From NCBI GenBank assembly GCA_964247055.1, contig OZ176050.1, positions 2,480,001 to 2,544,000 on the forward strand: DNA of 64,000 bases, given 5' to 3'. The notes under the pieces are model-generated. The model was not told the origin of the DNA. It saw only the letters and a list, made by a program, of their open reading frames with translations, and did no database searches. Positions 1,196-61,680 of this stretch are shown here, piece after piece; position 1 is the stretch's first letter, and each line of letters starts with the position of its first letter. Origin of the DNA: Paragordius varius. Its lineage: Eukaryota; Animalia; Nematomorpha. Both the position numbers and the translations under genes were made by a program.

Positions 1196-1227
1196 ATGCT
1201 TTTGCGCTAGTATTGATTTGCTGGAGG

Positions 1228-8186: not shown

Positions 8187-8189
<3 letters not shown>

Positions 8190-8227
<38 letters not shown>
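8190..8227. repeat. (TA)n microsatellite
   Basis: Perfect TA run. Other TA runs at about 20108-20135, 30640-30661 and 39575-39598. Confidence 0.95.
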
Positions 8228-8228
<1 letters not shown>

Positions 8229-9752: not shown

Positions 9753-10976
9753 GTATCCAAAAAGGCTGTGACATGCTTGCTTCTTACCGCCACTGTCAAG
9801 AGAGGACGACTCTTACCGCCTTCCTACGCTCGCCTCAGTGCAGGGGGATGTAATCATTCTTCAGAGCTTCTAACAAATATATGTAATGAAACGTATAATA
9901 CTGAGGACATGCATGATAAGCAAAAATGTATAAATCGATTTACATAAGGCGACTAAACTAAGTGCCAAATAATTTAGGGATTATATATTTACATCTATAC
10001 ATTACCGCAAATACTATGAAAATAAATTAATTTTGATGAATATTATTAACAGGGATTTCAATAATATCGTTAAAATTATATTAAACAGTGTAGGCAAAGA
10101 TATTTGGTTGTTTTTGTTTTATAGCACTGTGACAAAATTAGGGGAAAATATTCCGTATATTATCATGATAAAATTTATCAAAAATATCATAATGTTTGAT
10201 TTGTGCCACATGAGAGTTATAAATTATTACCGTTTTTGTTGTAATTGCTCAAAATTTGCAAAATATTTTTATGTGTCAATTCAAAAATATCACACATAAA
10301 CTTGATAAAAAATATATATTTTGATAGGAAAATGTATCAGGACTATCTTGGTGCTTTAGACCTCACGACTGAAAAAAAGTTATTTACATTTTGTGGCAAT
10401 GGCTCATTATCAGAAAATGGCAAAATTTGCGAACATTTTTTAAAATAAGTTTTTTTGGTGAAAGCTAAAGGATTCATTCCAAAAAATATTATTATATATA
10501 TCATAAAATACATATAAAAAGCAAAACAATTTTGAAAAAAATAATTTTTAAACGTCGACTCCGAAAGTACCAAAAATTTTTGCTCTTATAATAAGGGCTA
10601 GTTCTCTTAAACACGAAATGCCGAAATTGTGTGATAAAAATTTATATTTTTTTTTCAAAATTTAATTTTTATAAATATTTTGTTGAAACCTACTTCATAC
10701 TATTTGAAATGATAGAAACGGTATAAAAACGCGTTTAGATATTATAAAAACACTTTTTATACATATTTTGATGATTAAACATTTCTATCATTTCAGAATT
10801 TGGATTAAAACATTTATTCGTCTTCAAGATTATGCAATCAAATTTAATTTTTTTTACAAAAATTTACCAAAATATAAAGCAAACGAAGCTTTGAATTTAA
10901 ATTCTGATATAATAGAAGTTTTTGGCATGGAATTACATAAAAAATATGTTTTTATAATGTCTAAAAGCGTTATACC

Positions 10977-13900
10977 TAAGGTGACCAGATGTCCCGCTAT
11001 TACACTTTGTCCCGCGTCCCGCTATATTTTTAATGTCCCGCTTTTTCACGATTATATAAAAAAAAATTTTTAAATACATTTAAATATATTTTTTTATCCG
11101 TTAAATTTTCTATCATTAGTTATCTTTAAAATCTATATCAATTTTAAATTAAATTTTATTTTAAAATTAAAAATATTTATTATTTTCGTTCATATGATTA
11201 TACACTTTGCTTCCTAAACATATTCAAAAAGACAAATTAATATCACAAATCGCTAGCTTAAACGTTTACTCCAGAAAATTAAGGTAATAAAATATTCTAT
11301 ACTAATATTTTAGTTATATTACCTGCCAACATTATCAAAAAGACAATTTAATGCCACATATCGCTAGCTTATAGTTTATTCTAGAAAATTAGGGTAATAT
11401 AATATTTTTTTATACTAATATTAGTTTAAAAATATAAGTGCAAAAAGAGGTTGTAAATTCAACGATGAATTAATAAAAGAATTTCTTTTTATCAAAAAAA
11501 CGAAGAATGAATCATTTGTTAAATGTTCTTTATGCAAGGGGGAATTCACCCAAGCACATGGCGGCAAGCAGATATTACAAAGCATATGGAAACACAGAAA
11601 TATTAAAAATGTTTAGATATGGCGGCATCATCTTACAAAATGAGCGATTTTTATCGAAAAACCGCTTTTGGAGAGAAAGAAAAGAATTTGGAACTAGCCG
11701 AGAGACTTTTCTTTTCACCGTTAATCACAATCATTTCTTTAGATCTATGGATTGTACCTCACATGTTATTCGTACCTTATTTAATAAAAAATTTACATGT
11801 GCCTGTACAAAGGCTGAATCCATTGTATGCAATGTCCTTTCGCCACATGCCAATTTTAGACATAAAATTTGATTCAATAACGAATATTCTAGACAAAAAT
11901 AATTTAAAAGACAAAATCATCGCATATTGCCCTGAACGCCAATACGAACTTCGGTGGAAAAGCAAGGACGGACAAAAAATATTTTTCATAAATTAGCAGA
12001 TAATCCTAATCAAAACATGATTGGCGTTGGGTGTGCAGGGCATATTATACACTAAGCTATTCAAATAGGTACTGATTTTTTATCCCTAGATGTGAAAAAT
12101 AGTTGTTAAAATATATTCTTATTTTTATATATACACGGTACGCGTTGAAACGCTTAAGGAATTCTGTGAAAATGCAGAAGTTCAATATCAAAAAATGCTG
12201 GATATTGTAAAACTCGTTGGTTAAATTTTCTGCCAGCTATCGAAAGAATTTTAAAAATGTATGATCCTTCAAAACCTATTTTTTATCACAGGACAAATGT
12301 CCTACAACTTTGGAAAAGTTTTTTGAAAGTGATTTAATATGGTTAGAGTTCCTACATAATCAAGCATCTTTATTTCAAAATGTTATTAAATTTCGGCAAT
12401 CGTAGTAGCCAATGAAGTTAGCAACCTTAAATTCCAATGTCAAGAACGGTTAGAAAATAATTTTATACCATTAACCATCCGCAATATTATAAATAATTTA
12501 GAAAAACAAGGCAATAAATCGCCAAGATATCCTGTACCATATAAAAATGCTTTCTGCAAACTGTAAAGATTATTTGGCTGGACGGGGCAACTCAATTTGA
12601 TCATTTTCATTGGATAACTTTAAAACAGAATTTATTTGGTCAATGTTCAAAAATCATTTGATAACATCTGCAACTCCCAAAAATTCCCTATAATAATCTT
12701 TCAGAAAATAATCTTTTTTTCTGAAGTATCATTAGTTAAAAAATATTATTAATAATGAAAAACTTAAATTATGGACAACAGAAAAAATACAATAGAAAGA
12801 AATGGTTAGAAATATTTTGTCATTTTGAAACAAACTATGTTCCATACTATAATATTTTAAAAATTGTGGAATTCGCACTATCTTTATCTGGAACCAACGC
12901 TGCTACTGATCGCGTTTTTTCCACAGTAAATCAGGTGTGACATTGGAAAAATCAAATTTAAATGATGAATTTTTAAAGGCCATTTTATCTGTCAAATATA
13001 ATTTGACAAATTCTTATGAAGACTTCCACAATATTTTATAAAATGATGACAATCTGCTAAAACGCATTCACTTAAATAAAAAATATACCAAAGAATAAAA
13101 TATTTTCTTATATTTATAAAGTTTTTGTGTTAATAAATAAAAAAAAATACTTAAAATATTGTATAAGTCTTCATAAAAATTTGTCAAATTATATTCGAAC
13201 ACATAAAATGGCATTTAAAGTTTCACATTTAAATTTGATTTTTCCATGTCCATATTTGATTTACTGTGGAAGAACGCGTTCAAAAGCAGTGGTTCCACAT
13301 AAAGATAATGCAAATTCTATCATTATTGTGTGGAATATAGTTTGTTTAAAAATGATTATTTCAAACCATTTCTATTCTACTGTATTTTTTTCTGTTGTCC
13401 ATAATTTAAGTTTTCATTATCAATATATTTATTTATTAATGATACCTCAGAAAAAAGTGTCATTGAATTGCACCCTCTTGTCTTCCAAATAATCTTTTCA
13501 GTTTGTATAAATTTTTATGTTCTGTCTATTCATTGAGCCTCTTTTTCTGGATGATTTATAATATTGCGATTAGGTAATGGTATAAAATTATTTTCTAACC
13601 TTTCTTGACTTTGAATTTTAGACATTTGTCCTGTGATGAAAAATAGGATTCTAGGCGATCATACATTTTTAAAATTTTTTCAATAGTTGGCAAAAGAGCT
13701 AACCAACGAGTTCTACAACATCCAAGCATTATACCAACTACATTTTCCACATCCAGGGGTAACAAATCAGCAGTTCTTTTGAATAGCGTTGTGTCTCCGC
13801 CAATAATGTTTTGATTAAGATTATTCGCAAAATATTAAAAATATTTTTTGTGCCGCTCCTTGCGTTACCACCCAGCGCACTTTGCGATGATTTCATCTTT

Positions 13901-14217
13901 TAAATTATTTTTTTCTCAAATATTCATTATTGAAGTAAAATAAAAGTCAGAATTTTTACTGGGTAGAGAATGAGAGTGGGAAATAATATTGTGCATCAGA
14001 ATATAGCGATAAATTTATTTTCTGCAAATCTTTTTCTATTGCAGAAAATGCATGTGGTGAAAGGACATTGCATACAATCGCTTCACCCTTTGTATTTGTG
14101 TTAAAAGTAAATAAATATTACAATAAATTTTTTGCATAAAATTTTTTGGTTGTACCCCCCCATGCCCCCCTTTCTCGGATTTGTCCCGCTTTTTCCTTCA
14201 AAAAATCTAATCACCTA
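10977..14217 (+). mobile_element. hAT (Blackjack-like) DNA transposon copy 1, defective, with an inverted internal transposase fragment
   Basis: TIRs TAAGGTGACCAGATGTCCC / TCTAATCACC-TA (consensus TAGGGTGACCAGA). Fragments of a BED-like Zn finger (VKC-x-x-C...H...KH) and of the hAT dimerisation domain (WLEIF...IVEFALSLSGTNAATDRVFS). Flanks are GTTATACC (left) and TGTATGGT (right). Confidence 0.88.
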
Positions 14218-16169
14218 TGTATGGTTTATCACTTGGATACAACACATTCATTTTAATCATCCGATTCAAAGTGGGGTAGGTCTTTGGGGACCCCAGGCCT
14301 GCTCAAAATCAAATATTTTTGAAAATAAGAAAAAATTGAAACCATTGCAATTTGCACTTATATAACATTGATGCGAAATCGTGTGTGCATTAGCTGAATA
14401 CAAAAATAATGCAAAATAAACCTCTTTTTCTGTGTTTATATCAATGTTAGATGATATTTAAATTAAAAATAGCTTTAGTTTTAGCGTTAGAATCAAATAA
14501 ACACGATATTTTGCAGAAACGTAAAAGAAAAATGGTGAAGTAGTTTGATATGGACACTTTTTTCAAAATTTTTATTTATTTTGGCTAATATATAAAATGC
14601 TTAAGAGGATAGCAGCTTAAATTTAAATTGGAACCTTTCTTTCACTATTTTTATGAGAATATTAATTTAAATATAGTCTGCGTAGATACCCTAGTTCGAA
14701 TCGAAGAACATAATGGTATATCTATCCTACTCTATATTTTGGTTATGAAAGAAAAGCCAAATTAATGACATATTAGTGTAGTGTTTATCTTTCCGGATTA
14801 ATTTTTTATTATACAAATTTTTTTTTAATATTTTTTTAAAAAAGTTAACATTCCCGGCCTGGGCTTCCCAAAAATTAAAAAATTAGGTGTATTAAAAATT
14901 TATTACAGAGTTGAGATAGTGGGATAATCAAATTAGTTCGAACCCATCGGATTTGTTTCTGTTTAAACCTTAGGGACCGGTTCTGGTTCGCAGTGTTACC
15001 GGTTCATAACTACTAAAATCAATCCAAAAGTTATTAAGGTTAAGACTTTTGCAAACACTTTATTTATCAATGCTTTTCATTGATCCTTTAATTCAACTGC
15101 TTTGTCACACCTCAAAACTTTTAAATTATTATAAAATATTAATTTACGTATAAATCTTAATTTAAAGTATTATAAAATATTAATTTGCGCATACTTAAAA
15201 AATGATATCTCGCACATTTTAATCTGTGTACTCATGTTTAATAAATACTAGAATCAGTGGCTGCATTTTTGTCTTAAAAACGGCCGTCGCATTTTATATA
15301 TGTATGGGGATTTATAAATATTTTATTAGATTTCATAAGACTGTGGAATGCAAACACATAATAATTTTTCGACTTCGTTTCCAATTGAGTAGATTTATTT
15401 AGAAAATTTGCTTAAGAAATATCAATTTTATTTGGATTTTTCGAAAAAAATTTTGCATGCGGGCCCCGAGTGGTTGGATTAGTGGACGAGGTAAAGTTAT
15501 ATAAACAAGGATTGATATTCGTTTTGGCTTCAGTTTCAATTTCAACACTATATTTATGTCTCTGGGTCTAACAATTTTGGAATTTTTCTAATTATTTTGA
15601 AATGGCTATTTTCCTTCTAATTTTTGATTTACAATTTAATTTTTTAATGTTAAAATAAATGGTACTTTAGCCTGAAATATCCGAATATTCATGAATCAAT
15701 AAAACAATTTTAAAAAAAATAAGGTTAAATCATAAAAAGGAAAAGCAAGAATCTTTGACGACATTGCAAACGACGTGGTTTTTCTAATAATAATTCGGTA
15801 AATAAATCACAATGCTAACAAGCACCTAGTTTTTATACTTCTTTTTTAGAGTAAGATTCAAAAAATTAAAGCCAAATATAAATTGCGCCTCGTTATAAAA
15901 ATTAGTATTTCATTTTTATGTTTTTGATAAATTTGTTATAAGCTCTCACCATTTTTAAGCGATTGTAGATAATGAGAGGCTTTTTAAACCCCAAGCAGTT
16001 GTGGCAATCGACCAAATGCAAAAATGACCTTATAATTTCTTGGTGAATGTGTTATTAAATTAATTTGTAATTAGTATTTAATTTATCCTTGTCTAATAGA
16101 TTATATATACTCGAACATTTGTTAACGCCCTTTAACATAAAGTAATAATAATTACATTATATGATATCA

Positions 16170-18060
16170 CTCTTTCGAGCGGTCATATCCGTAAATTATT
16201 TCGCCATAGAACCCTGTCTGCGTCCTCGCGTTTTAGGTTCAGTTTTGCCATGTCCCTCTTAACTGTATCTATCCATCGCGTTTTAGGGCATCCTTTTCCC
16301 CTCTTGCCTTTCACAATATAATCATTAATATTTTTACCAATGTAATTATTATCTCTTCTTTCTACATCTCCGAACCATCTTAAAATATTTACCATCATCT
16401 TTTGCGTCACCGGTTTGATTTCCGTACTTCATCTTATGTAGACATTCTTCACCTTGTAATTCCTCGCACCGCACATCAATCTAACTCATTTCAATAACCT
16501 CAAAGTGCCTCTCTTCTGACTTCTTTAATACCCATGTCTGTGAGTTGTACATCATTGTTGGCTGTACAACAGCACTGTAAATTACCCTTTACTTTTAGGT
16601 CATTTATCGCACAAAACATTTGAGATCTTTTATGCCCAACTATTTCGAATTCTTAAATTAATATCATGCGTTAACGAGCCATCTGCTGCTAAAATGGCTC
16701 CTAAATATTTGCATTCCTCCTGACCTTTTAATACGCACCCTTCTTCTAATTCCATTTCTCTTTTTTCTCACCAAAACTTATAAGTTCCGATTTCTTTTTA
16801 TTGACTTTTAAAATGCATCGTCGTAACACATCAATCCATTTACCCACCAATTCTTTCAATTCATGCAACTCGTCGGACAGCACTATAAGGTCGTCTGCAT
16901 AAAGAAAATACCAGCCACCATGTTGCCCTACTTCTTTTGAAATTTCGTCCATGCATATTATAATAGTAACGGGCTGATTGCTGACCCATGCCCCTTAAAT
17001 TACTCCCTGGTGTGTTTTAATTTTGGTTTGATGTGACTCGTACATGCTTTTTAGAATTTTTATGTAATTTTCAGGGACGTTTTTCCGTCTTAAGCTCCAC
17101 CATATTAGGCTCCGTGGTATTCTGTCAAACGCCTTTTCAATATCAATTAAAAAACGATGCAACTCTTTTTTCATTTCTATATGCTTCTCGATTAGCCTTC
17201 TTACTACGTGAATCAGATCAATGGTGGACATTGCTGGAATAAATACAAATTGATTACCCTCTATACTAACCATTTTTCTCATTTGTTTCTCTAGTACTTT
17301 CTCAAATAACTTCATTGTATGCGACAACAATCTATCCCTCTGTAATTATTATCATTATTACCTCCTTTACCCTTGAAAATGGGAACAGAGAAACTCTCCT
17401 TCCATTCGGTTAGTACCATACCTGTAGAAACTACATTATTAAAAATATCCGTCAAAAATTCACTACCTTTCTCTGACATTTTTCCAACAGTTTATGTTAA
17501 TATCGTCTGGACCTGCAGCCTTATTTATAGACATCTCTTCTAAACCGGCCTGGACTTCTTCTATTGTTATACTTTCAATATGCGCAGATATATAATCTGG
17601 TGTTTCGGGTAAATTTGTTTTACTGACGCCCAATTCAAGGTCCTGGAAATATTCTTTCCACCTTTTCAATATTTTCGCTTCCTCAACGAGTAATTTGCCG
17701 TTTTTATCTTTAATAGCGGTCGCGTAAGGGGGCAAGTCCAGCTTTCTTCTGTGTCTTTGTCGAGCAATTTCAAAAACTTTGTTTAGACCTTGCTTACTGT
17801 TTAACTCCTCATATGATGATGCCGTCTTTTCTTTTTTGACCAATCTTACAAGCCTTTTAAGTTCCTTCCTTTTATATTTTTCCTTGTCTTCTGCATGGTG
17901 GGTAAACCTCCACATTTTAAAAGCTTTACTTTTCTCTCGCGATTTCAGAATTATTTTTTCGTCTTTCAGCCATGCCTCTCTATAAATCTGATTTCTGCCG
18001 CCTTTTATTCCGCACACCTTAACTTCCGCCTCTCTTATTTTTTTGCCACCTGAGAACAAA
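16170..18060 (-). mobile_element. RTE-clade LINE, 5-prime truncated and frameshifted (different family from 4390-7950)
   Basis: NKAAGPDDI, LSHTMKLFEKVLE, FLIDIEKAFDRIPR, FLYADDL, LRWFGDVERR, RGKGCPKTRW in ORFs 17463-18059, 16995-17330, 16746-16952 and 16183-16410. Confidence 0.85.
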
Positions 18061-18707
18061 CACTTTTTGGATCGCTGTTCCTGTCTAGTATGCCTGCCGT
18101 TTCTACAAATCTTTCTCTACTGTTTCTTAAGAAATCCCATTTAATTACCTTCGGCGCTATAAGCTTAGGCTTTTTATCATTTATTATTAAGGTTATATAT
18201 GTGCAAAATTTTGCCATGGTTTCGATTTCTTCCATATTTTTTAAAGAATTTCGTTTTAACAGGTCAGGGGTATTTAACTACCCCAATTTGAATCGAAGGA
18301 CTAAAATGAATGTGTTGTATCCAAGTGGTAATATAATTTTAACGATATTAAATTTCAAATCAGTTAGAGGTAATATACCGAAAATTCCCTGTTAATACTT
18401 ACACAAACACTTTAATATTCAACAAAATTAATTTATTTTTATAAGTTATTGCGGTAATGTATAGATGTAAATATATAATCCCTAAATTATTTGGCAATTA
18501 GTTTAGTCGCCTTATGTAAATCGATTTATACATTTTTGCTTATCATGCATGTCCTCAGTATTATACGTTTCATTACATATATTTGTTAGAAGCTCTGAAG
18601 AATGATTACATCCCCCTGCACTGAGGCGAGCGTAGGAAGGCGGTAAGAGTCGTCCTGTCTTGAGAGTGGCGGTAAGGAGTAAGCCTGTCACAGCCTTTTC
18701 TGGATAC

Positions 18708-19480
18708 ATGGATTTAATATTAAAAAAGGTACGGCAGTATGCAGTAAAAATAATCTGCATTAATGAATGCTAAGATTTTATGCATGGACCAATTGCTAAG
18801 GCATCGGCAGATTCAATCGTTTCGGCGTTTTCGTCAGCCCTTCATAGCTATCGTAAAGATAGTGTTTTAAATCCATTTCCAAACGATTATATATGTGATG
18901 GTTTAAGAAATTATGCAAAACTAGTTTGGAAAATTATTTTATAGGATAAGGATTTTGCATTTCTGTCTTCTGAAAATACATCGCATAATAAGTTAATCCA
19001 AGATATATGTCAAGCGTTACAAAAAAATATTACTTTTTGTGATCCTAAAGAATTTCAAAATATACTATCACTATGTCCTCAGCATACAAGATTTTCTAAA
19101 CCCAATTATATATTCCAAATTTATAGTGAAATATCCAACATATCCAATAAGTTTATGAATTTCATGGTTCCTCACTGGAAAACTTATATTCCAAACTATG
19201 TAATGGTTTATGTCCTAAGTTTTCCAGAGTATTTTTTTATATTTATGAGTTAGCAAGGTGCTTTCGGCGACGGAATTTATTTTTCTTCGGAATTATCTGT
19301 TTGCCTGAATTTTAGTAAAACCGATAAATCATGGCAACACAGTATGATGGAAAATATAGATCTAATTGTATACAGCTTCAGTAAGCTTTGAAAATATAAG
19401 CCATATAAAAAAAATGTTAAAGCTTTTATATAAAAAATAACCATATTTTGAAATAAAATTTATTCTATTAACCTAACGTA
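18708..19480 (+). pseudogene. PARP16: PARP16-like duplicate, frameshifted
   Basis: Inverted copy of 9752-9015. There is a 1-nt deletion before FHGS (AAGTTTATGAATTTCATGG vs AAGTTTTATGGATTTCATGG) and a deletion after WQHSMM. The micro-introns are retained at 21 nt and 25 nt. Confidence 0.8.
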
Positions 19481-20704
19481 GGATTAGGGGCTAAACTTTT
19501 AATTCCTTATAACCCTACTGTATTGGGTATCCACCTTAGATTTACACATTAACATGTCCAATTAACCCTAAAATATCATACGTTTTTTGGCTCAGAAAAT
19601 TTTGGTAATTACAAAGCATGATAGGAATTTTGCGCAAAATTAACCATTTAAATAATATTAAAAAAATATCTTGTCGACTATCCAAAATCAATTACGTTTG
19701 ATATGTTTAAGGTGTTCAAGGGTGAATTTAAGGTGTTTAAAAGGAATATGAATATATTTATTTAAAAAATGATTTTTACTCCACACAGTCTATTATAATA
19801 AATCATATCAATAAAAATTAATTATAGATGGCAAAAATACAAAGACATCAGACACCTATTTTATTGTTGCTGACAAGTTAATAAAAATTCGATATATTCA
19901 TGTATATGCTCATAATTCACCTTATATGCTATTCAAGTTTTTTATCATATATTTTTAGGAATATTGCTTCTGTATTATTATATAAATATCAATGGTTTCC
20001 AATAATTATTTGTATTTTAATTGTTAAAATTATATTTTTTACTCAATTCGACCAAAATGCAATGTATTAGATATATAAAAAAATAATTTTTTAATCATTA
20101 TGGGTTAAATATATATATATATACATATATATTATATTTATATTGTAAAATAAATATTTTTGATCAGTTTAATATATGGAAATCTAAAAGAATTGGGCTA
20201 AATTATAAAAATGTAGTAAGTGGATTTTTAATACGTATAAAAGTTAATAAAATAAGTAATTTCAACTATATTTGGTTCAGCTCATAAAATGATATGTAGA
20301 GTTATTTTTATTTTTACTTATTTTGCTAGTTTTTATCTCATTGAAAGCCAATTATGATATTTTTGAATTATAATTATAAATTAAAAGCAATCTCATAAAC
20401 TGAGTGTCTGTATTATTATGGGATCCTTATGACAAAAATAATAAATATAGTTTAATTAATTTTTTTAAAATTATCTGTGAAATATGTTTACAGAAATAAA
20501 TTACATAACCATATCGAATTTGTACTTTACATATAAAATATGACACATTTATTAAATAAATTGTCGTATAGATGCGTTAATAATTATTTTAACCAAATAT
20601 GAAAAGTATATCGAATTTCAAACAAAATGTTGAATAAATAATGAGAAAATTATTATTATGTACTTTAAAAATAAGGCCTGAAACACTTTTTAGTAGCTAT
20701 ATAT

Positions 20705-21048
20705 TTATATATTCGAATTTATTAATGGTGATCTGTGATTAAAGGTATAAAAAGATGGACGATTTATAATTGACTCAAATGGCTAAAAATTATATTATAT
20801 AAACTTTGTTTGGAGATCCTAAATTAATCTTATTTCTCTGTAATCTTCAACAAAAATTGAAATCGCTTATTTGATACAACAAGACGTAAAACAGCTTGTA
20901 AAGTAATATCTATGGGTAGGCTTGAAATGTTCTGTAACGCGCATATAATTTTTATCTGAAAATTAAACCATTATTCACATTGTATTGCCGAGTAAGCTGC
21001 ATGAAATAGGTTTAAAATAGAAAGGGCAAAAATTGTTGTAGCCGACAT
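20705..21048 (-). pseudogene. MMGT1: MMGT1/EMC5 duplicate, frameshifted
   Basis: Inverted copy of 1228-1577 with small indels in exon 2 (extra A after intron 1, deletions near ACAGAACATTTCAAG). Introns are retained as 23 nt and 22 nt GT-AG. Confidence 0.82.
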
Positions 21049-21079
21049 CCTTCAGTAAATCAATACTAGCGCAAAAGCA

Positions 21080-21765
21080 TATATCCTTTCCCATATAACC
21101 GTATTATATGTTTTTTATAATTTTGCAAGATGTTGAGTATCTTAAAAACGAAAAACTCCCTAATGTGGATAAGTTCCCTCAATCTCCTGTCGGCACAAAA
21201 GTCCCCAAAATGATGCGAAGAAACATTGATATATGGGGATCAGAACTCGTTCAAAACTATTTAATACATAAACAATATCGTATACGGGCTTTAACCGGGG
21301 GTAATCTCCGACATGAAAATTTTGGGTATATTAAAAATGTCGTAAATAAGAAGAAAAAAGAACAAAAGCTCTTTGCTGTTTGGAGGATTGATCCTTCGTG
21401 GTACCTGTTACGAAAAAGAGTCAAGGTATTCTTTAATCTAACATTAAGGTGTAAGAATGGGAGGTGGGAAGGCTATACATCATTATGTAACACCTGTTCG
21501 TAGTGGGATTATTATTTTAGAGATCGGAGGCCGAATAGAATTTGGGTTAGTGGAAGAATGGTTATCTAAGCTTGCTGCAAGAATGTCTATTAAAGCCCAA
21601 GCTATATGCCACAAAATGCTAGAACACGAATCTAAAATTTAAGCGTATAAAGAAACAATAAATTTAAACCCATACACTTTTGAATTTTGTATCAATCGTA
21701 TGCAAGGCTGCTATAATTGGTTCAGCCCATATGATTATGAATGGTTTGGGAAACAGAAATTTTAT
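21080..21765 (+). pseudogene. MRPL16: MRPL16 duplicate, start exon largely deleted, frameshift and premature stop
   Basis: About 60 bp of exon 1, including the ATG, are missing. There is a 1-nt deletion at TGGTACCTGTT (vs TGGAAACCTGTT) and CAA>TAA at ~21639. Introns 21101-21129 (29 nt) and 21426-21448 (23 nt, still with CTAAC). Confidence 0.85.
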
Positions 21766-22679
21766 TAAGAATACTTTATTAAATGCTTTACATTTTGTAT
21801 ATAATTATGAGAGATTATTATACAGGTCTTTCTTTTCATAATTAAACAGGGAAGATTTTTGTAAGTAAATTTTTATATTAATATGATTTATTTTTAGAAG
21901 ATGGCAGTTTTGAAAACTAAAAGCCATACAAAAAGTTTATAAAATACGGACAAAAATGAATTTTTGAATAAATTATAACCCAATATGCTCCTGTTTTATT
22001 GTCTTGTTAAAAATACGTAATTACTTGATGGTTGTCAAAAATTGGAACAAAATACATTAAGAAATACCCATATTATGTAATAGTATTTTATTGAAGAAGC
22101 ATAAACAGCACAATTAGTTGGTGTTTGGATTATTATTAAAATCGTATTACAATTATTGCTTTCTATTTTACTTCATGAAATGAGTAATGTTTAAAAATCT
22201 TTATTTATTTTAATGTATGTGTACAGTTCTTACAATATGCATTTATAATGTATGTTCAATAATTTTATTGCCAGTTATCCAATGCGTAAAATACTAACCC
22301 ACGAAATTATTTAGTAGTACACATATGAAAGAGGATTGACGTGAGAATTAACATAGGCTTTAATTTAATGGATATTTTGTAATGTTAAATTTTGAGAATA
22401 TTATAGCAATTTATGTTGACATTTGTAATATTGTTGTTACGTATTTAGATGCGGAATTTTGTGGGTTTTTAACTTTGATAAATTAATAAATAGTAAAATA
22501 CGTATTTTAAGATTTTTTATGTTAATTATTCCTTAATAATAAATATTTTTCCTTATGCTAAATACCTGTATTAAATATTGGTATTATAATTTTATATAGT
22601 TGTTTTTACTAATTAAAAAAACACAGGTAAATATATATTTGTGAAAATTTAAGTAGATTTTAGATATTTGTCTTTTATG

Positions 22680-27412: not shown

Positions 27413-27419
27413 TATGTAT

Positions 27420-29192: not shown

Positions 29193-48736
<19,544 letters not shown>

Positions 48737-50173: not shown

Positions 50174-52451
50174 ATGAGCACCGAAATCTATCAAGTGGAA
50201 AAAATATTAGCCAAACGCAAATACAAAGTAATAAATTATTTTTATTGTATGATAAATTATTTAGTAACTATTTAATTTTATTTTTATAAATATTTTAAGA
50301 ATGGAAAATGCAAATTTTTGATAAAGTGGAAAGGTTATAAAATGCATGAAAGCACATGGGAACCTCAACAAAATATACTGGATCCTCTTTTGATTTTGGC
50401 GTTTGAGACAGAGTAATTTAAATATATATTATATATAAATATATATACAATATGAGTAAATATTCATTACTTATAATCTGTCAATAATTATTGACATATA
50501 GTAAGTATGAAGCAAAGAGATATATACTTTTCCCGCTTTTTCTTGTTATTAACCTATAATAATTTCTTCTTTGCTATATATGCTCTATCTTTTGAAAAAG
50601 TAGCCAGGGTACATTTTACCATCTAAACAGTATTGAAGATTTGATATTGTATAGTTATTGTACCTTTCGGGAGACTTTTTTTAATTCAATATAAAATTTT
50701 CGGGGCTAAGCGCTAAATTAAATAACTAAAACTTACTTTATTTTTTTCAATACAAAAATGGCTAAAATTTCACTCCATATCATATATGACTAAAAAGAAA
50801 AAAAAAACTATTATTGATTAATATCCTAATTTGGAAATAAAATTTATTTAAAATATAATTATTTTAAATTTATGTTGAAACAAATATATATGCATTTTAT
50901 ATTTTTAAAAAGCTATTATATCCATCCTAATCAGTATATTTAAAAAATGGAAGATGTTTGATTTTATTTATATGTATACGTCTAGCATAGTCGAGCTTTT
51001 TGCCAGTTCAGTCCCACTTCATAGAGTAGTATTGAAAAAAAGCCCCCAAAAATCTTTTATTTGAAGCAAAATTGGCGAGCCCATTGAAATTTTATAAAAC
51101 TTATTCATTCATATATGAATGTCTATGTTATATGTTAGTCTTCCGAAAGGCACAGGTTTTTTAAATACAAGGTGTAGTAATGAGTATCTACCGATTTTTT
51201 GGTCGTAATTTCATTAAGGAAATCATTTATTTTATTTAAAATATTTTTCATCGAATTCTACTTATTTCGCCCATCTTTCAAGTGATAAAGCCATGCCAGG
51301 GAAAGTACCATGTCTTCTGGACCTCCGGTCATTTTATCTATGCATTGTTTAAGTTAATTTGGCGATAGCGCTGTATATCGGTTCACAGAGTTTTAGTTTA
51401 AATACACAATATCGCTCTGTAACCAGATGAGCATAATCTTTTACCGAAGAGTTGATATTGATGGACGGGCCTAAAAAGATCTCATCACCTGTCACACAAT
51501 TCAATGCAAAAATGATTTTCTTTCGTGGTATTGAAACAGAAAGTTATTTTGTGATTTTCTTGACGTTCGTTTTAAATGAGTGGACCCATTTACCGTATTT
51601 AAGGGCCTGTCTCATTCGCATAGACGTCTTGATTTGGTACTGCCGATTGCCGTTGAGCTTATAATCATCTTGTACTCAATCGTCTTCGCAGTTGTGAGGT
51701 CTACCAAATCTCCCACTCTCTTTCACATTGATATCACAACTTTTAATTTTTAAACCCTGTTTCACCATATGTTTCCAGAAATTGATGACTTTCAAGAGCC
51801 TTTTTTTCTGATGAAAGAAGTAAAGCAATATGTGCTGAAAATGTTCAATACTGAATTTTGAAATAAGACGAGGCCCTTTGGCAATGAGTGTTGATTGGTT
51901 AATATAAGATGAACAAAACGGCGTTTGTATCTAATTAATCGTCTGCGGGTTTTCCGCCGACATCTTCTGTTAATTAAGTCGGTAATTACTTATTATTACA
52001 GCTGGTATATGTTGCTAATATTCAATAAAGAATTCTATCGTTTTTATTTTTTAGATTACGCAATGAAAAAATGCAAAAAATCATAGATAAGCGCCGTGGT
52101 TTTTCCAATCATATTATCGATTCGCCACGATCATCTAGTAAAATGAAATACTATTGCAATGTGCTAAATAATCAAATTAATGCATTGAAGGCGTACCAAA
52201 CAGCTTTAGATCACAATATCCGGACGCATATTGATCAATTGAAACATCATGACAAGTCTGACAAATTAAATTCTCGCTATCAAATATTAAATGGCAAGGC
52301 CAATATACAATCAAATGATACAGTTCTCGAAAACTTTAATAGACCATCTGTGATAGTTTGGCGGAAAAGTTCAATGGAAAATAAATACAAACTCACTCCT
52401 CCTAAAGACTTGTATTTTGTAAAATACATATCTTACATGTTCGTGAGATAA
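50174..52451 (+). CDS. Polycomb/CBX-type chromodomain protein; 3-prime end uncertain
   Basis: Exons 50174-50227, 50300-50412, 52055-~52451, with consistent phases. [54 protein letters not shown] has the Pc/CBX signature KWKG...STWEP-x-x-NILDP-x-L. Introns are 72 nt and 1642 nt. Confidence 0.8.
51240..51960 (-). mobile_element. Degenerate mariner-family transposase relic in CBX intron 2
   Basis: Broken frames contain [45 protein letters not shown] and CVTGDE, which are mariner N-terminal HTH, WVPH and VTGDE motifs. Confidence 0.7.
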
Positions 52452-53115
52452 AGTTAATCGGTGCTGGAACATTTATATTATATTTCTTTTGGGAATCCTT
52501 TTTGTATCTTAGCGAATGAACTATATAATGTTTATATAAAATGTAAATCATTATGATATCTACTAATTGCATTACATTTCGTTTTTAATCAGATCTCAGA
52601 ATTAATCAACTATAGCCAATTAACAAAAAGAAGGCATAAGTGGCCTAAAAGTGCTAAAATATTATGGTTTTCTCTTTCAACTTGTTAACAGAATGTTTTA
52701 CATAATAAAAAATGTAATTGGCTGGAAAACAAGTATCTTAGTTTAATTAGCGATTGATAGTACCTTATTATTTGTAATAGAAATCGTGATTGAATGTTGT
52801 ATAAACAGATAACAGGACGCAAAACTTTTTTAAAATATTTTTTTAGAGAAGTGTATTTTATTTGCTGTTCCATGATTTACAGTAATAAAACTAGTTTTTA
52901 TAAAAATTAAATTATAGCTATTTATTGTCGCTTTTATACTGTTAAATATCAAAAAATTATGTTTTATATATCGGGATTCTGATTTAGGTTCTGCAACATA
53001 CAAAAATACGCTATAAATTCTAAATTTATTGCAAATGCTGAGCATATAAAACTCAACATTAATAAAAAATTTAAGACAAGCTTTATTAAATAATGAGTAT
53101 AATTGATTAAACATC

Positions 53116-53804
53116 CTATACAGTTATTTTGGGTCCTAAATAGGGTTGGTTTTCACACCAATAATCATCAGGGCATTTTATTTTTTGAAGAACGATTTTA
53201 TCTCCAACTTTTAACGTTCCATCACCATTCTTACTAAATATATTAAAATAATGACAATCTCTATCGAGAGAATGATTGTATGGTGGTATTAAAAGATCGA
53301 TAAAACTACCGGATTTTTCAAACGTTCTTATCTCATGTATATTATTATCGTTTGGAGTCAGCATTACGCATTTACATTGATTATTGGCTGTAATTTTGGA
53401 GATAAATTTAGTTAATATATTTGAATTGGTGATCCACATTGATTTTAACTTTTCCAAAAAACTAAACGTTGTGATAGTTATTTCGCCTGTTAAGACTTTA
53501 ATAAAACAATACATATGCGGATGATCATGTAAGGGAAGGCGAGAATTAGGGGGTAATGAAAATATACTTAGGCTTATATTCTCATCTTGGTATATTTGAA
53601 TAAATTGAATTGGTGTATAATCATAGGCTAATAATAAGATCAAAATAAACCTATGGTGGAAAGTTTTCCAGAGAAACCAACATCTTCGCACCGGATTTTA
53701 TGAAAAAGATTTTCAATATGTTTTAAATCAAGAGAATTTATAGAGTTACCATATTTGGGAGAAATATTGCGGGCAGTATTTATAAGTTGATTAACCAAAC
53801 ACAT
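53116..53804 (-). CDS. ADO: 2-aminoethanethiol (cysteamine) dioxygenase, 2 exons, 221 aa
   Basis: Exons 53804-53651 and 53627-53116, separated by a 23-nt intron 53650-53628 (GTTTATTTTGATCTTATTATTAG). Spliced MCLVNQLINTARNISPKYGNSINSLDLKHIENLFHKIRCEDVG...TPIQFIQIYQDENISLSIF...LPLHDHPHMYCFIKVLTG...NIHEI...FIDLLIPPY...RDCHYF...YLGPK carries the PCO/ADO cupin motifs. The N-terminus of the supplied ORF (MRRCWFLWK...) is an off-frame artefact of the intron. Confidence 0.92.
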
Positions 53805-56409
53805 ATGTCCATCGCCTGTGTGCTATTGCGACTGTAAAGAAATACATGTGTTAAAAATAAAATTTATAATGTATAGCAGACGGCATAATTGTTTTCAAAA
53901 GACGGCTCTTTTTGCCTTAAAATTTTATTTTTTTAAGTTAATCAAAGCAATTTATTTTAAATGAGGATATTCCACTATTTTCTTCAGGTATCCAAAGGGA
54001 TCAAAGGCATTTTCTTTCTCATTCTCCACACAGGCTACCCTTGTCGCCTTCCTATGCTTTGCTATATTTCCAAATAAAGAGCGCTATTTCTTATTTGTTG
54101 GTTCGAAACATCTATAATAAAACGTATGTAAATACAAAAATGATAGAAACTAATTATATATTGTTTTATTAATTATTATGATATATGTATACCTTACAAA
54201 AACAAAAGTCATTGACAGACACTTTCACCGAAATCTACCTCCCTGGATTTTTAAAGACGCCATACTGGTCGATGTTGTCTTTGGCGTGTAGGCGTCTTCC
54301 TCCATCAGTTTGGTTTTAATTTAACCACTTAAGATGGTTCACAAATTATTCATAAGTTAGTATCAGTTATTACGCCATATATACCGCAGAAGCTATCTCC
54401 ATATATTTTCAGTAAGTGGCGAAAGACTTCTATTTCAAAGCCGCTTTAAGTTAGCTCATTTTGTGATGGAATAGATGTGTTTTAATAATACCCGATATGT
54501 GTCATGAGACACTAAACACGTGTTAAATTTTTTTAAAAAACTATACCAAGCTATGAGCCGCAAAAATAATTGACAAATCCCTGAGACTTATGAGCGTATA
54601 ACATTGCCTCAAAAATCAGGGGGATAAAAAAAACTGATGAAATATATTTATTCTGAGAGTAAAATGTAGCAGTATTAGCATGGTGCGTTTGGTTGTGGCT
54701 CTTAGGGTGATACAAGAAAGTTATTTACAGTTTTGTCTCCATATCAGAAAATAATTTGCTCACCTTATTTATATAAATATTTTGGTGTAGGCTAAATTCG
54801 GCATTCCAAAAAATATACTAAAATAGTTTATACTCTGCATATAAAAAACAAAACAATATTTTTTAAAAAATTACTTTTTAGATGTGGCGCTGAAACCATA
54901 TCTAAAATAAGCTACTCTTAAAATAAACGCAAAAATGCCGGGTTGCGATAAAAATTAATATATGCTAAATCTTGACATAAAAATATTTTTTAAAAAATGC
55001 ATAATTTTTATGAAAATTCAAATTTTGGTTGAAGCGTATTTCTTACTAGTGTAAGGCATGAGGAAGCGGTATAAAAACGAGTGTAATCAATGATACTAAT
55101 CATTTTATCACCTCCGAAAATCGTTTAAAATTCGTTCATCTGCAAATTTATGTTAAATTTAAATTGAGTTTTTTTAGGAAATTTAGAAATATTTTAAAGT
55201 AAACAAACCTTTAAATCAAAATTCTACAGCGAATGTTTAGTATCATTAAATTGTTTAGAAAAAGTGATTTATTCGTTTCCATCATGCTTTAAATTAGATA
55301 AAGAAAACTTCAACAAAATTTATAAAAAATTAAATTTTCGAAAAAAAAATATCTAATTTTTTAAAATTTTTTAATTTGATTTCAAAATTTCGCACATAAT
55401 TAAAATCGCGCATTGGAACTTTTGCGTTTATTTTACGAGAACTGGACCATATTAAATCAGCGAAATGAGACTTTCGGAGCCCACATCTAATAATTAAAAT
55501 TTTTTGAAAATATTATTACTTATAATATGTAGTTTATAATATATTTTAGTTATGTTTTTAGGAATGAAGCCTCCCAGCGTTCACCAAAAAAAATATTTAA
55601 ATAAATAGGCGATGCCATTTTCTGATATGGAGCACCACTTACCATTTTTTTATATAACTCGTAAGGGCCTAAACCTATAGCACCATGATAATCCAAATAT
55701 ATTTTCCTATAAAAATATGTATGTTTCATCATGTTAATTTTTTAGGGACACTGTGTAAGGAGTTAGCCATGCCGGTGGCAGGCCGAATATTTTAGGAGGA
55801 TTTGCTTTACTAAATTCAATCTGAGGGAAGGTAATTTTATTGAGCCCCTATTTGACCCTTTGCATGATATTAATAAGTATCCATATCTCACCTTCGCTAG
55901 TTTTGATTTTTCCTGTATCAGCCGGACACATTATCAAAATTTTATCATTATAGAGACCAACAGCTTCTAGTTCATTCTCCAAACAGCTAAACGCTTGTCT
56001 TAAGCTAACTTCCGAATCTCACCAATAAAGAGATGACTGCAGTACAAAGCAGATGAAAAGGATATTCTAGAAGGTCTCGTAAAACTATTTCTATCAATCG
56101 ATAGCCAAGTTAAATATGAGGTAGTGGGCGCCCCTGTTTTAGTTTTTTTCCGAATAGAGCTAATTTTGAATATTTATATCAATCTACATATATACCCATG
56201 GTAATTCATCTCCTTCAAAAGTCTTAGATAAATCAACAAGCCTTCTCTCAAAAAGATGGCTGAAGCGTAAAACCATTGTTCATCTTTCATGCCTGATGCC
56301 ACAGATTACGGAGGGCAGTCATTAAAATTGTAAACTTTACTTAAGCATCGTTTGAGAGGATTTTGTACGCTATATATAATAAAGGCAATGCCCTTGTTAT
56401 CCTTAAAAG

Positions 56410-56680
56410 CAGGGGTTTTCAAGGCCCTCCGATACTGTCCATGCCGCCCGTGAAAATTTTTAAAATCCATAATTTGCAAAATTATGCTCGCAAAATTTTA
56501 TAAATTAATGTTTCTTATACAATTTTGCTAGATAAGTCTATTCGACTGACAACAAACTAGTAAAATAATCTATATTGTGTTTGCATTTTCAATCTTATGT
56601 TTAAAATCTTATAAATTAACTATGAATGTTCATATTATTTAAAATGAGGCTCGCGTAGCCATTTGTGTTAAACGCCTCTG
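56410..56680. mobile_element. hAT-type MITE (Charlie-like termini)
   Basis: CAGGGGTTTTCAA ... TTAAACGCCTCTG. The TSD is degraded (5/8 match). Confidence 0.55.
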
Positions 56681-57043
56681 GTTTAACGGATTATAATGGT
56701 TTCAACCTATTATATTGGATTCCCATTCCATTGACATGCGTCTAAAGATCAATTAACAGAAAACAAGATATTATAAGTATACCACTCGGTTTCCAATTTA
56801 AAGTATCAGGCACACTAGGCTTCGGATCTGGGCATTTAGTTACTAAAAATCCTAAGTAATCTTTATTAAGCATAACTCAGAATATACTAATAACATATTT
56901 ATGGAAATTAAATACCCAATAGGTCTCTGGGCATACGACTTCAGACTACAAGGCTTGGGTTTGGGAGTGTGTATCATAATAATGTTCTCTCTAATTTTTC
57001 CCAAGCTAGCCAGGAGAATTATCTTAACACAATAAATCTATAC

Positions 57044-58070
57044 CAGGAGTGGCTAACCTTTTTTCCCGCGGGCTACTTTTTTGAAAGAAAATTTTACGCG
57101 GGCACGTAGGAATATTAAATATTAAAAGATCTAATTATCACTTTAATACAAATGATGCAACTATATATATCTCTATTTTTTGGATTGGGGTGACTAGCAC
57201 AGGCCATTTTAAAATAAATAACACGAAAAATAATTATTTTTGAGTAGTTTTTTTATATATTAAATTAATCGGTTAATTTGCAACAGAGAAAAAAACGTAT
57301 AATTGAGCAATTCCAGCGTCATCGGTGGATACATCAATTTAATACGAAAAATTTTACATGATTTAATATTTTCATGAAAATTTCGGTATTCTGATTGAGA
57401 TCATCACCTCTCTGCATAATTGTGTTTCTGGGATAAACTTTTTTATTCCATAATATTCTTTTTTCTTCATAATTTTCAAACACACTTCAGAAGCTTCAAT
57501 GAAGGCTTCTTGCCAAATTTCTCCCTAACTGATATTTGTGAGTTGCGATTCTGGAATTTTTTTGAGTTTTGCTGTATTTCAAATGCAGTGTTTTTGAGCA
57601 TTTATTTGCTCTTTGAATAGGATTTTTGATTTACGAATATCTGAACGGTATTTCGTTCATGTGATACGTAAAATGTATATGGACATTTCTTTTGGCAAAG
57701 CCACTGTGGTTGCATATCAAACAAGTACATTTATCATTATTCATGATAAAAAAATAATCTTACTCCCATTAATTTCTTTAATGCAATATTTTAGCATTTT
57801 TTTCTGGCATGAATTACTGAAGCGTAAGTTTAAAGGATACTTCTGTTACTTTTGCTAATTTTAAACTGTATTCTAAAGAAATCACAAATGTTTAAAGTTC
57901 GAATAAAATTTAATTTTTCCAAACGCAAAATAAAAATTAAATTATTACTTTGGTGGAAAAAAAATTCGATGTAAAAATATTTTTAACATTTTTTTAAAAA
58001 ATTTAGGCGGTCACGTTTTGCAATCTCGCGGTCATGAAGTCAACCGCAGTCGACAGTTTGTCCATCCCTG
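57044..58070. mobile_element. hAT-type non-autonomous element
   Basis: TIRs CAGGAGTGGCTAACC / GTTTGTCCATCCCTG, with 8-bp TSD ATCTATAC / CTCTATAC (7/8). Confidence 0.78.
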
Positions 58071-58637
58071 CTCTATACGCTTTAATCTAATCAATCTGCA
58101 TTTTGTCGATACCAGGTGTCGACTAGTGTAGTATTTTTTCCCTCATAATCACTACCCTACATCAATCTTTTTATAAAAGGCGTGCCTTCTCCTGTTGCTT
58201 GAAGTTAGTGCGAATAAGCAATGTTTCAGATTTGAGCAAATGGGTATTTTCCATTTAAACTGTTATTCATAGTAGAAGGTGGTCGGTAAACATATCATTG
58301 TAACAAGCAACCAAGCTTTTTACAAAACGGAAGATCTGTAGCATGTATGATGACAAAATCAGTTTGTAATGGGACTGCCTAGCCATTCTGGTGTGGGGGG
58401 CATATTGGTTACCAGCGAAAAAAGTATTTATCAAGAGATGACGATTACCGCAGAAAGTTATCAAAAGTTTGCCAGCCTTAGTAGAGATAGTAAGGTTGCG
58501 TATATAGACCAAGAAAAGACATCTCTTTTCTTTTGAAACCCGAATTACTGATTAGAAGGCCGGTGTCCCTATATCGAATCAATTACGGATCTAAAATCGT
58601 CTGAAAATTAAACACCAAGATGTTGTGCGACCGTAGG

Positions 58638-58878
58638 CAGAGGTTGTCCAACACAAAATGACGAGCCGCATTTGAAATAAATATGAGCATTCATATATTT
58701 ATTAGTCTTCAAACATATGACTGCAAAAAGCAAACGCATTATAACATTTTTTCCTAGTTCTTGACGATTAATTAGATATAGACTTTGATAAAAAATGGTT
58801 TAATATAATCAATTTTAATAAGATTTTGTCACAATATTTAAGCCAAAATTTTCGCGGGCCGCATGTTGCACATCCCTG
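58638..58878. mobile_element. hAT-type MITE
   Basis: CAGAGGTTGTCCAAC ... GCGGGCCGCATGTTGCACATCCCTG, with flanks CCGTAGG / CCCTAGG. Confidence 0.6.
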
Positions 58879-59371
58879 CCCTAGGGACTTTCAGGGTATG
58901 ATGTTTAGCATTTATTTTATCATTCCGTATGCGGTTCTTAACGCCGCTGGCATTAGATTTCGCTATCAAAAGCCCCAGATGCTAAGAGGTCAAGTGTTGA
59001 CCGATTTTCTGGCGATCATCGTTGGGTTCATTTTATATATAGAGTCAAATATCGAATTTAAATTAGAGCAATTATTGGATGAAAAAGATTGTACCAAGAC
59101 TAAAAGACAATAATGTAATTTTGGTTATCTGTGGCTTCAATTGGAATCTATAATAGATAAGCGAAATAACTTATCCAACGGATAATAAAGTGTTTGTTAA
59201 ACAAATTTTTTTTTAACATGTCACAATTTCAAATTGAGACTCACAATTATATAAAATGTTTTTGTCATATGAACAACCTTTCATTTAGAGTGATTAAAAT
59301 ATCACGCTGAGTTGCAAAACCGCTTCAATATATGATGTGAGTTGAATGGTATTTAAATTTTGATGTATTGT

Positions 59372-61672
59372 TAGGGTGACCAGACGTCCAGCTACGTTTT
59401 TAAAATGTCCCGTTTTTTCACGATTATATAAAAAAAAATTTTTAAATACATTTAAATTTTTTATAAAAAAAATATTTTTTTATCCAATTTTTTATCATTT
59501 ATCTTTAAAATCAATATCAATTTTAAATTAAATTTTTTTATAAATTTAGATTAAAAATATTTGTTTTTTTCGAATTTATATCATATAATTATACACTTAG
59601 ATTCCTACTCCTACTGCCAACATTATCAAAAAGACAAATTAATACCACAAATCGCTAGCTTATAGTTAACTCCAGAAAATTAAGGTAATATAATATTTTT
59701 TTATACTAATATTAGTTAAAAAATATGAGTGCAAAAAGAGGTTGAAATTCAACGATGAATTAATGAAAGAATTTCTTTTTATCAAAAAAACGAAGAATGA
59801 ATCATTTGTTAAATGTTCTTTATGCGAGGGGGAATTTACCCTAGCACATGGCGGCAAGCATGATATTACAAAGCATATGGAAACACCGAAACATAATAAA
59901 TGTTTAGATATGGCGGCATCATCTTACAAAATGGATTTTTATCGAAAAACCGCTTTTGGAGAAGAAAAAAATTCGGCACTAGCCGAAAAAGATTTCTTTT
60001 CACGCCGTTAATTACAATCAATTCTTTAGATCGAATTGTACCTCGCATGTTATTCGTACCTTATTCAATAAAAAATTTACATGTGCCCGTACAAAGGCTG
60101 AATCCATTGTATGCAATGTCCTTTCGCCGCATGCCTTTTCTAAAATACAAAAAGATTTGCTGAAAATTAATTATCGCTATACTCTGATGTATCAAATCAC
60201 AAGGAAACAAAATTATTCCAAACTTCAATAGGATATTTTGATCCAGAAACCGGAGTAAAAATTAAAATTTTAGACATAATATTTGATTCAATAATGAATA
60301 TTCTAGACAACAATAATTTAAAAGACAAAATCATCGCATATTGCCCTGAACACCAATACGAACTTCGGTGGAAAAGCAAGGACGGGAACAAAAAATATTT
60401 TTCATAAATCAGCAGATAATCCTAAACATGATTGGCGTTGGGTGTGCAGGGCATATCATACACAAAACTATTCAAACAGGTACTAATTTGTTATCCCTAG
60501 ATGTGAAAAATAGTTGTTAAAATATATTCTTATTTATATATATACACGGTACGCGTTGAAACGCTTAAGGAATTCTGTGAAAATGCAGAAGTTCAATATC
60601 AAAAAATGTTGGATATTGTAAAACTCGTTGGTTAAATTTTCTGCCAGCTATCGAAAAAATTTTAAAAATATATGATCCTTTAAAACCTATTTTTTATCAC
60701 AGGACAAATGCCCTACAACTTTGGAAAAGTTTTTTGAATGTGATTAAATATGGTTAGAGTTCCTACATAATCAAGCATCTCTATTTCAAAATGTTATTAA
60801 ATTTCGGCTATCGTAGCAGCCAATGAAGTTAGTAACCTAAAATTCCAATGTCAAGAAAGGTAAAAAATAATTTCATTCAATTAACCATCCGCAATATTAT
60901 TAATATTTTAGAAAAACAAGGATTAATAAATTGCCAATATATCCTGTACCATATAAAAATGTTTTAAACAAACTGTAAAGATTATTTGGAAGACTGGACG
61001 GTGTGCAATGAAATTAATCATTTTCATTGGATAACATTAAAACCAGAATTTATTTAATGCGATGTTCTATAATCATTTGATTACATCTTCATCTTCCAAA
61101 ATTCCCAAAAATAATCTTTCATAAAATGATCTTTCTGAAGTATCATTAGTTAAAAAATATAATAATAATAAAAAAAATTATGGAGAACATAAAAAATAGT
61201 GTAAAAAAGAAATGGATAGAAATATTTTATCATTTTGAAACAAACTATGTTCCATACTATAATATTTTATAAATTGTGGAATTTGAAATATCTTTAACTG
61301 GAACCAACGCTGCTACTGAGCGTGTTTTTTTACAGTAAATCAGGTGTCGACATTGGAAAAATCAAATTTAAATGTTGAAACTTTAAATACCATTTTATCT
61401 GTCAAATATAATTTCACAAATTCTTGTGAAGACTTCTACAATATTTTAAATAAAGCTGACAATCTGCTAAAACGCATTCACCCAAATAAAAAAATATACC
61501 AAGGAACAAAATAATACTTTATACTTATAATGTATTTGTGTTAAAAATAAATAAATATTACAATAAATTTTTTGTATAAATTTTCTTTATCTATACCCCC
61601 TTCCATGCTCCAACCCCCCTCCCCATTCTCAGATTTGTCCCGCTTCTTCCTTTAAAAAATCAGGTCACCCTA
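59372..61672 (+). mobile_element. hAT (Blackjack-like) DNA transposon copy 2, defective
   Basis: TIRs TAGGGTGACCAGA / TCAGGTCACCCTA. Collinear with copy 1 (BED-like finger VKCSLCEGEFTLAHGGKHDITKHMETPKH, dimerisation-domain relic). Flanks are TGTATTGT (left) and GTTATACC (right). Confidence 0.9.
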
Positions 61673-61680
61673 GTTATACC

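Follow-up and report, generated by a model that had tools for sequence, protein, structure and literature searches.

A hAT-bounded local inverted duplication in Paragordius varius, most likely a composite insertion

The DNA analyzed here is a 64,000-nucleotide stretch of the nematomorph Paragordius varius (assembly GCA_964247055.1, contig OZ176050.1, positions 2,480,001 to 2,544,000), which we refer to as the window and number from its first letter. It contains two decayed copies of a hAT transposon, designated E1 and E2, that lie in the same orientation on the plus strand and enclose a 45 kb insert carrying an adenylate cyclase gene (ADCY), a CBX-like gene and ADO. The target-site duplications (TSDs), 8 bp long, of the two copies are exchanged, and the DNA directly to the left of E1 recurs in inverted orientation within the insert (18332-22149). 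The feature is a local inverted duplication bounded and caused by hAT elements, most likely a composite insertion. We regard as probable, though far from assured, a model in which hAT ends from two sister chromatids placed an inverted duplicate of ~41 kb between two hATs.

The order of the unit is a-E1-b ... b-E2-a, in which a denotes an outer 8-mer and b an inner one (Table 1). The outer copies, both GTTATACC, match at 8/8 positions, and on the plus strand of the window this word occurs at these two sites and nowhere else. The inner copies match at 7/8 positions. The probability of both matches arising by chance is 8e-8 at window composition and 7e-5 when the central TAT shared by the words is counted as a fixed target preference, which rules out chance matching of the flanking 8-mers. 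A sequence-only reading of this DNA had described two hAT copies in the same orientation with crossed TSDs, and its coordinates and letters for all four 8-mers proved exact. No strongly preferred target 8-mer is evident: the eight flanking 8-mers at six related hAT loci in metagenome contigs all differ and none equals a or b, a sample of relatives that leaves the family in this genome unsampled. Those six loci gave no TSD pairs, which probably reflects the collapse of repeat copies during assembly. A piggyBac-like miniature inverted-repeat transposable element (MITE) of one family adjoins both hAT target sites (14226-14230, 4 bp from the TSD; 61681-61706, ~22 bp from the TSD); this arrangement may mark a shared insertion hot spot.

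The outer word a lies within a host element that the insertion divided. The DNA to the left and right of the unit constitutes two parts of a palindromic Tc1/mariner-like MITE, a full-length relative of which is located at ~54620-55750. The right part is itself interrupted by a piggyBac-like MITE of 525 bp, which begins ~22 bp downstream of the right copy of a. When the 525-bp element is removed and the left flank, GTTATACC and the right flank are joined, the alignment crosses the junction, both to two further members of the palindromic family and to the left arm of the split MITE itself. This continuation outscores 99.4-99.97% of random pieces of the window (empirical p 0.0003-0.006), whereas the alternative join of the left flank to E1's own right flank gives a background score (median). 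Removal of 10977-61680 restores the split palindromic MITE, exact to the base. Because site a rejoins the MITE through the junction, ~50.7 kb was inserted into one 8-bp site. Two earlier suggestions are borne out by this base-level alignment, namely that the DNA left of 10969 and right of 61680 belongs to one split host element and that this element carries the outer 8-mer as a genuine TSD.

Self-comparison of the window revealed the inverted duplication, which was missing from the earlier description. Positions 18332-20180 are an inverted copy of 8160-10085, and positions 20695-22149 are an inverted copy of 1-1585, a match that runs off the start of the window. We infer that the whole of 18332-59363 (~41 kb, designated flank 2) is a single inverted copy, 3.5 kb of which is aligned within the window. 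In the insert, ADO lies 31,491 nt beyond the point that mirrors the start of the window, and this interval holds two large extra insertions. Homology between the insert and the left arm stops at TTA/TTAA (10082-10085), 884 bp short of site a. In the insert this end point is the internal junction 18331/18332, which carries a TTA microhomology, and b is present on both inner sides. The source of 53950-59363 lies outside the window, as does that of flank 1 (14226-18331), for which no close homologue was found within the window. The two arms contain copy-specific insertions of several kb, and there are no N gaps in the window.

Two candidate interpretations of this region were rejected. One treated 14230-18327 as a single piggyBac element; alignment resolved it into a complete MITE (14230-14712) and a separate piggyBac-like end (18140-18327). 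This two-piece reading of flank 1 shifts the likely junction from b to 18331/18332 and makes a left-arm deletion unnecessary, so that the insert would comprise 4.1 kb attached to E1 and 41 kb attached to E2, fused at that point. The other candidate equated b with the 10086-10093 homologue and put the target on the sister chromatid. It predicts that the DNA before the second b mirrors 10094 onward, which it does not. Beyond the junction both copies run into the end of a transposable element (TE): the left arm (10082-10090) into a Tc1-like terminus that is partnerless in the window, and the insert (18328-18335) into a piggyBac-like terminus.

The consensus of the hAT terminal inverted repeats (TIRs), TAGGGTGACC, is perfect at both ends of E2 and decayed in E1, and the copies differ in length by 940 bp. 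Stop-free pieces of E1 and E2 alone gave no matches in Pfam, in a word index or in metagenomes. A metagenome contig (L003), found as a DNA-pattern relative of the hAT end, carries behind the same 21-nt left end an intact 540-aa open reading frame with a Dimer_Tnp_hAT domain (E 7e-10) and a match to Hermes. E1 and E2 are identified as hATs because this open reading frame aligns to both of them (2e-15 to E2, 3e-5 to E1). Short TIRs, an 8-bp TSD in the rejoined host MITE and a hAT transposase place the pair in the hAT superfamily. Metagenome contigs that share the left end of E1 and E2 include this intact hAT (L003:4252-7578) and a MITE (L006:918-1573). The TAGGGTGACC end resembles those of hAT-Blackjack elements, a candidate group for the pair. 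E1 also contains a foldback (13148-14090), in which a condensed inverted copy of the transposase lies between two direct repeats of ~25 bp. The foldback is ~16% diverged from both forward copies and is therefore older than the split between E1 and E2.

Divergence of the hAT copies parallels that of the duplicated DNA. E1 and E2 differ by 7.3% and the arm segments by 7.8% and 9.1% (all gap-masked; Fisher p versus the hAT pair, 0.59 and 0.09). The hAT pair shows no greater divergence than the arms, so its copies would have been near-identical at the time of the event. In duplicated coding exons, 7.5% of fourfold sites differ (interval 3.9-12.9), as do 4.7% of zerofold sites (interval 3.3-6.4%). 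Twice the zerofold rate, which applies if the left copies were constrained, is 9.4%, close to the ~10% at the hAT ends. Divergence between E1 and E2 is uneven, with ~5% in the central 1 kb and ~10% at the ends (permutation p 0.007). The arms vary along their length even more than the hAT copies: introns and the 3' flank are 12-14% apart, and the region upstream of PARP16 is 2.4% apart. Given this spread, the dates are rough. The low value upstream of PARP16 (9690-10085 versus 18328-18775) may reflect constraint or conversion near the center of the inverted pair. The simplest reading of these sequence comparisons would be one event, at ~9-10% divergence, that involved near-identical hAT copies and was followed by some conversion between them. 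For the two copies compared, overall divergence equals that of the arms, and a low-divergence center and one-sided foldback are also present.

These observations suggest a model of hybrid-end (alternative) transposition that begins with a single donor hAT. The donor, flanked by TSD b, would lie in reverse orientation ~40 kb to the left of E1, just past the left copy of ADO and ~30-32 kb before the start of the window; its b word is predicted to read ACAATACA on the plus strand. Reading the two b copies as one old TSD gives a source order of reversed flank 1, b, hAT, b and reversed flank 2. During or after replication, transposase would pair the left end of the hAT on one sister chromatid with the right end on the other. 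Both ends would then be inserted at target a within the MITE, each still joined to a donor flank that bears its own b. The long flank of 41 kb (the region of ADO, CBX, ADCY, MRPL16 and PARP16) and the 4.1 kb flank would be broken or freed from stalled forks and joined through the TTA microhomology at 18331/18332. The resulting product, a-E-b(flank 1/flank 2)b-E-a, would be both a composite insertion and an inverted segmental duplication. The donor flanks would rejoin as a footprint, so that the left neighborhood stays intact and the insert becomes its inverted duplicate. The long flank would span the donor-to-target interval minus its last 884 bp, and one may speculate that the fork stalled just before reaching the target. 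Subsequently, E2 may have lost the foldback through deletion between the short direct repeats, while MRPL16 and PARP16 would have decayed in the insert.

One hAT and one aberrant jump suffice for this pattern. As in a composite insertion, TE termini with a new TSD lie on the outside and the interior duplicates DNA near the presumed donor (18332-22149 mirrors 1-10085, and the remainder is expected to do so). Alternative-end transposition had been listed among the alternatives in the sequence-only reading and is now the best reading. We advance more tentatively the proposition that the locus is a natural, long-fixed animal fossil, in which replication-coupled hybrid-end transposition duplicated a hAT and ~41 kb of its neighbors, inverted, in a single event.

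Several observations weigh against hybrid-end transposition. The foldback is found in E1 only, which obliges the model to add a loss in E2, and the central ~5% tract of the hATs is what a crossover or conversion tract would give. The internal junction falls exactly at a piggyBac-like end without explanation. The donor site is beyond the window, and contiguity of the inner flanks is read from the 7/8 match only. The 41 kb cargo exceeds most re-replicated segments in maize, of which 8/9 are under 19 kb (PMC4270019), and the junctions are known from the assembled contig alone. Moreover, exchanged TSDs cannot tell a hybrid insertion from ectopic recombination; only chimerism can (PMC2775673). Ectopic recombination between two local, near-identical, opposed hATs (b-E-b, ~40 kb leftward, and a-E-a within the MITE, placed there for example by a local hop) is a possible but less probable origin. 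It would yield an identical TSD pattern and likewise a permuted, inverted cargo, either by a sister crossover with break-and-join at 18331/18332 or by closure of a local circle there and its recombination into a-E-a. The exchanged TSDs that TE-mediated ectopic recombination requires are present; this outcome is documented for Galileo in Drosophila (PMC2775673), and permuted order through circles is documented for human duplications (PMC7450558). The one-sided foldback and the central tract, both of which it accounts for, somewhat favor it, and a locally excised circle recombining into a neighboring fresh hAT copy, which amounts to the circle of the sequence-only reading given a local origin, is a live rival. 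However, ectopic recombination requires two insertions, a crossover and an end-join, and it leaves the 884-bp gap between the cargo and a as a coincidence. Were the event dated by the 5% tract, ~5% divergence would be expected between the arms, whereas the estimate from the pseudogenes is 9.4% (the zerofold rate doubled; zerofold interval 3.3-6.4%). Equal ages and fewer steps lead us to favor hybrid-end transposition.

The sequence-only reading had proposed that a single hAT-mediated event exchanged the flanks of two independently inserted copies, most simply through integration of a circle. The single event stands; independent insertion is weakened, given that the divergence of the pair does not exceed that of the duplicated arms. 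A circle that brought an independent hAT of its own from an unrelated locus and integrated into a chromosomal hAT would yield swapped TSDs and agrees with a real outer empty site. Contrary to what this origin requires, the cargo is related to the landing neighborhood: it copies adjacent DNA in inverted orientation and ends 884 bp from the outer site. Such a circle would also have met this hAT among many just by chance, and the hAT copies are no older than the duplication. A foreign circle is largely refuted by these findings, and we consider it extremely improbable. The same grade applies to a pre-existing composite of two hATs and 45 kb of cargo that moved as a single 50.7 kb unit. The outer left end, outer right end and single outer TSD are traces of a macrotransposon, and the unit indeed has the shape proposed earlier, but travel as a unit leaves the matching inner flanks, and a cargo that mirrors the DNA immediately adjacent to the landing site, without explanation. 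The abundance of foldbacks and inverted repeats in the window is compatible with a multi-step history that lacks a single causal hAT event, such as a switch of replication templates between inverted hATs, or an older duplication on which overlapping inversions followed. We find this very improbable: three or more junctions must land on TE ends, and equal ages favor one event. An assembly artefact, in which haplotypes or collapsed repeats were misjoined and their flanks swapped, is improbable. The junctions come from the assembly, and short-read metagenome contigs of related hATs likewise show no matching TSDs. Against misjoining, the hAT copies are 7-10% and 940 bp apart, the sequence is gap-free, frameshifts occur in one gene copy only, the arms are 8-9% apart with their own multi-kb insertions, and the outer site rejoins exactly.

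Table 1. Features of the window and their coordinates.
Feature	Coordinates	Strand	Remarks
Source arm, outer part	1..1585	+	MRPL16, open exons, minus strand; mirrors 20695-22149
Source arm, inner part	8160..10085	+	PARP16 5' exons open, minus-strand ATG at 9684; mirror of 18332-20180
Split palindromic Tc1/mariner-like MITE, left part	10270..10968		Left arm, center ~10850, right arm over ~120 bp
Outer TSD a, left copy	10969..10976	+	GTTATACC; presumed new target, inside split MITE
hAT copy 1 (E1), decayed	10977..14217	+	Internal inverted partial transposase copy ~13148-14090
Inner TSD b, E1 side	14218..14225	+	TGTATGGT; presumed old donor TSD
Flank 1 (4.1 kb)	14226..18331		Between b and duplicated arm; includes mixed AT-rich DNA
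Flank 1: complete piggyBac-like MITE	14230 to ~14712		
Flank 1: decayed LINE (long interspersed element) encoding reverse transcriptase	~16180-18130		
Flank 1: separate piggyBac-like end	18140-18327		
Internal junction	18328..18335 (18331/18332)		Left-arm homology ends at TTA/TTAA, matching 10082-10085
Flank 2 (41 kb)	18332..59363	-	Inverted copy of DNA left of E1; aligned over 18332-22149, presumed beyond
PARP16 copy in insert	18780..19380	+	Frameshifted
MRPL16 copy in insert	21080..21760	+	Frameshifted, with stops
Adenylate cyclase (ADCY)	29193..48736	+	Inspected exons open, GT-AG ends
CBX-like gene	50276..52451	+	Chromodomain exon 50276-50413; last exon ~52056-52451
ADO	53116..53804	-	Open; 23-nt intron 53628-53650
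Decayed LINE-like remnant, nested MITEs	53950..59363	-	Adjoins inner TSD b; identity suggested by motifs judged by eye
Inner TSD b, E2 side	59364..59371	+	TGTATTGT
hAT copy 2 (E2), decayed	59372..61672	+	Without foldback; 10-nt perfect TIR
Outer TSD a, right copy	61673..61680	+	GTTATACC
Same Tc1/mariner-like MITE, right part	61681..62680		61681-61701 and 62233 to ~62680
piggyBac-like MITE interrupting right part	61706-62228		TTTA/TTAA flanks

Within the 50.7 kb macrotransposon-shaped unit, ADCY, CBX and ADO look intact and MRPL16 and PARP16 look decayed. The exons of the left MRPL16 and PARP16 are open, whereas the copies in the insert are frameshifted. Spliced genes were searched one exon at a time. 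Exon 2 of ADO gave matches of just 26-35% in protein collections. The first exon of ADCY (29193-30636, 482 aa) had no match among 1.84 billion representative proteins and is apparently a long, lineage-specific N-terminus. The LINE-like remnant at 53950-59363 had no database match. Introns of 22-24 nt with GT-AG ends occur in ADO (53628-53650), MRPL16 (~750-775) and PARP16 (~9520-9540), in contrast to the multi-kb introns of ADCY. One ADCY intron harbors a Tc1/IS630-like element arranged as a head-to-head palindrome of 5.9 kb (34491-40424), the arms of which are 6% apart. Between MRPL16 and ADCY lies a 6.3 kb element (22237-28506) with long inverted arms (6% apart), satellites of 102-110 bp and an internal direct and inverted duplication. 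A palindromic MITE with 21-bp tandem subterminal repeats is present at 7012-7381 and 41699-42102; one copy is inside a LINE (~4407-7720) whose 382-aa reverse transcriptase frame is still open.

The event would have left ADCY, CBX and ADO each in duplicate. A pair of hATs in direct orientation with swapped TSDs need not imply integration of a circle, and the signature described here (outer TSD, inner TSD, inverted neighbor) can be scanned for in any assembly. If the proposed mechanism is true and common in this genome, it would constitute a transposase-driven route to gene duplication that has so far been shown mainly in laboratory maize. Its significance is limited by the fact that this is a single locus, old and dead. 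The genome of another nematomorph, Gordionus montsenyensis, is rich in DNA transposons and has a GC content of 26.9% (10.1101/2023.06.26.546503). Literature searches, which returned plant and Drosophila work, gave no animal hAT composite insertion, although this is limited evidence of absence. The mechanism class itself is already known; clear natural cases in animals that combine both pairs of TSDs, a host site that can be rejoined and an adjacent source seem scarce.

The closest known system is provided by the Composite Insertions of maize, which arise when Ac ends undergo alternative transposition accompanied by re-replication (Zhang et al. 2014, PMC4270019); a sister-chromatid version of alternative transposition has also been described (bioRxiv 10.1101/2020.01.07.897926). 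In the maize insertions, TE termini and a new 8-bp TSD lie on the outside and the donor flanks are switched and fused inside at 3-4 bp of microhomology (PMC4270019). The Paragordius unit shares the hAT termini, the new outer 8-bp TSD, the nearby target and the macrotransposon shape, and it may also share the switched flanks fused at short microhomology. The maize cases involve two separate elements (Ac and fractured Ac) and are de novo laboratory alleles, mostly of 14-24 kb. In contrast, the unit described here would derive from one donor with both TSD copies kept inside, both of its hATs are near full length, its 45 kb cargo is inverted relative to the source, and the event is old (7-10% divergence) and took place in an animal.

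A similar case in Drosophila is hybrid element insertion, which involves P elements (Gray, Tanaka and Sved 1996, as summarized in PMC2775673): ends on sister chromatids act as one element, TSDs are exchanged and two initially identical copies result. In that summary the element belongs to the P superfamily and the products are recombinants, deletions, duplications or inversions flanked by opposed copies, whereas here direct copies enclose an inverted duplication. The Galileo inversions of Drosophila buzzatii (PMC2775673) likewise represent a natural rearrangement spotted by exchanged TSDs. Galileo copies are opposed and demonstrably chimeric and flank a balanced inversion; the hATs in Paragordius share one orientation and flank a duplication, and their chimerism is unproven. 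Segmental duplications through circular intermediates (PMC7450558) resemble the unit, as read here, in their permuted source order, with donor flanks switched, and in a microhomology junction. Those duplications occupy distant sites without TE homology or TSDs, whereas the Paragordius duplication lies beside its source, is bounded by hAT ends and carries two TSD pairs.

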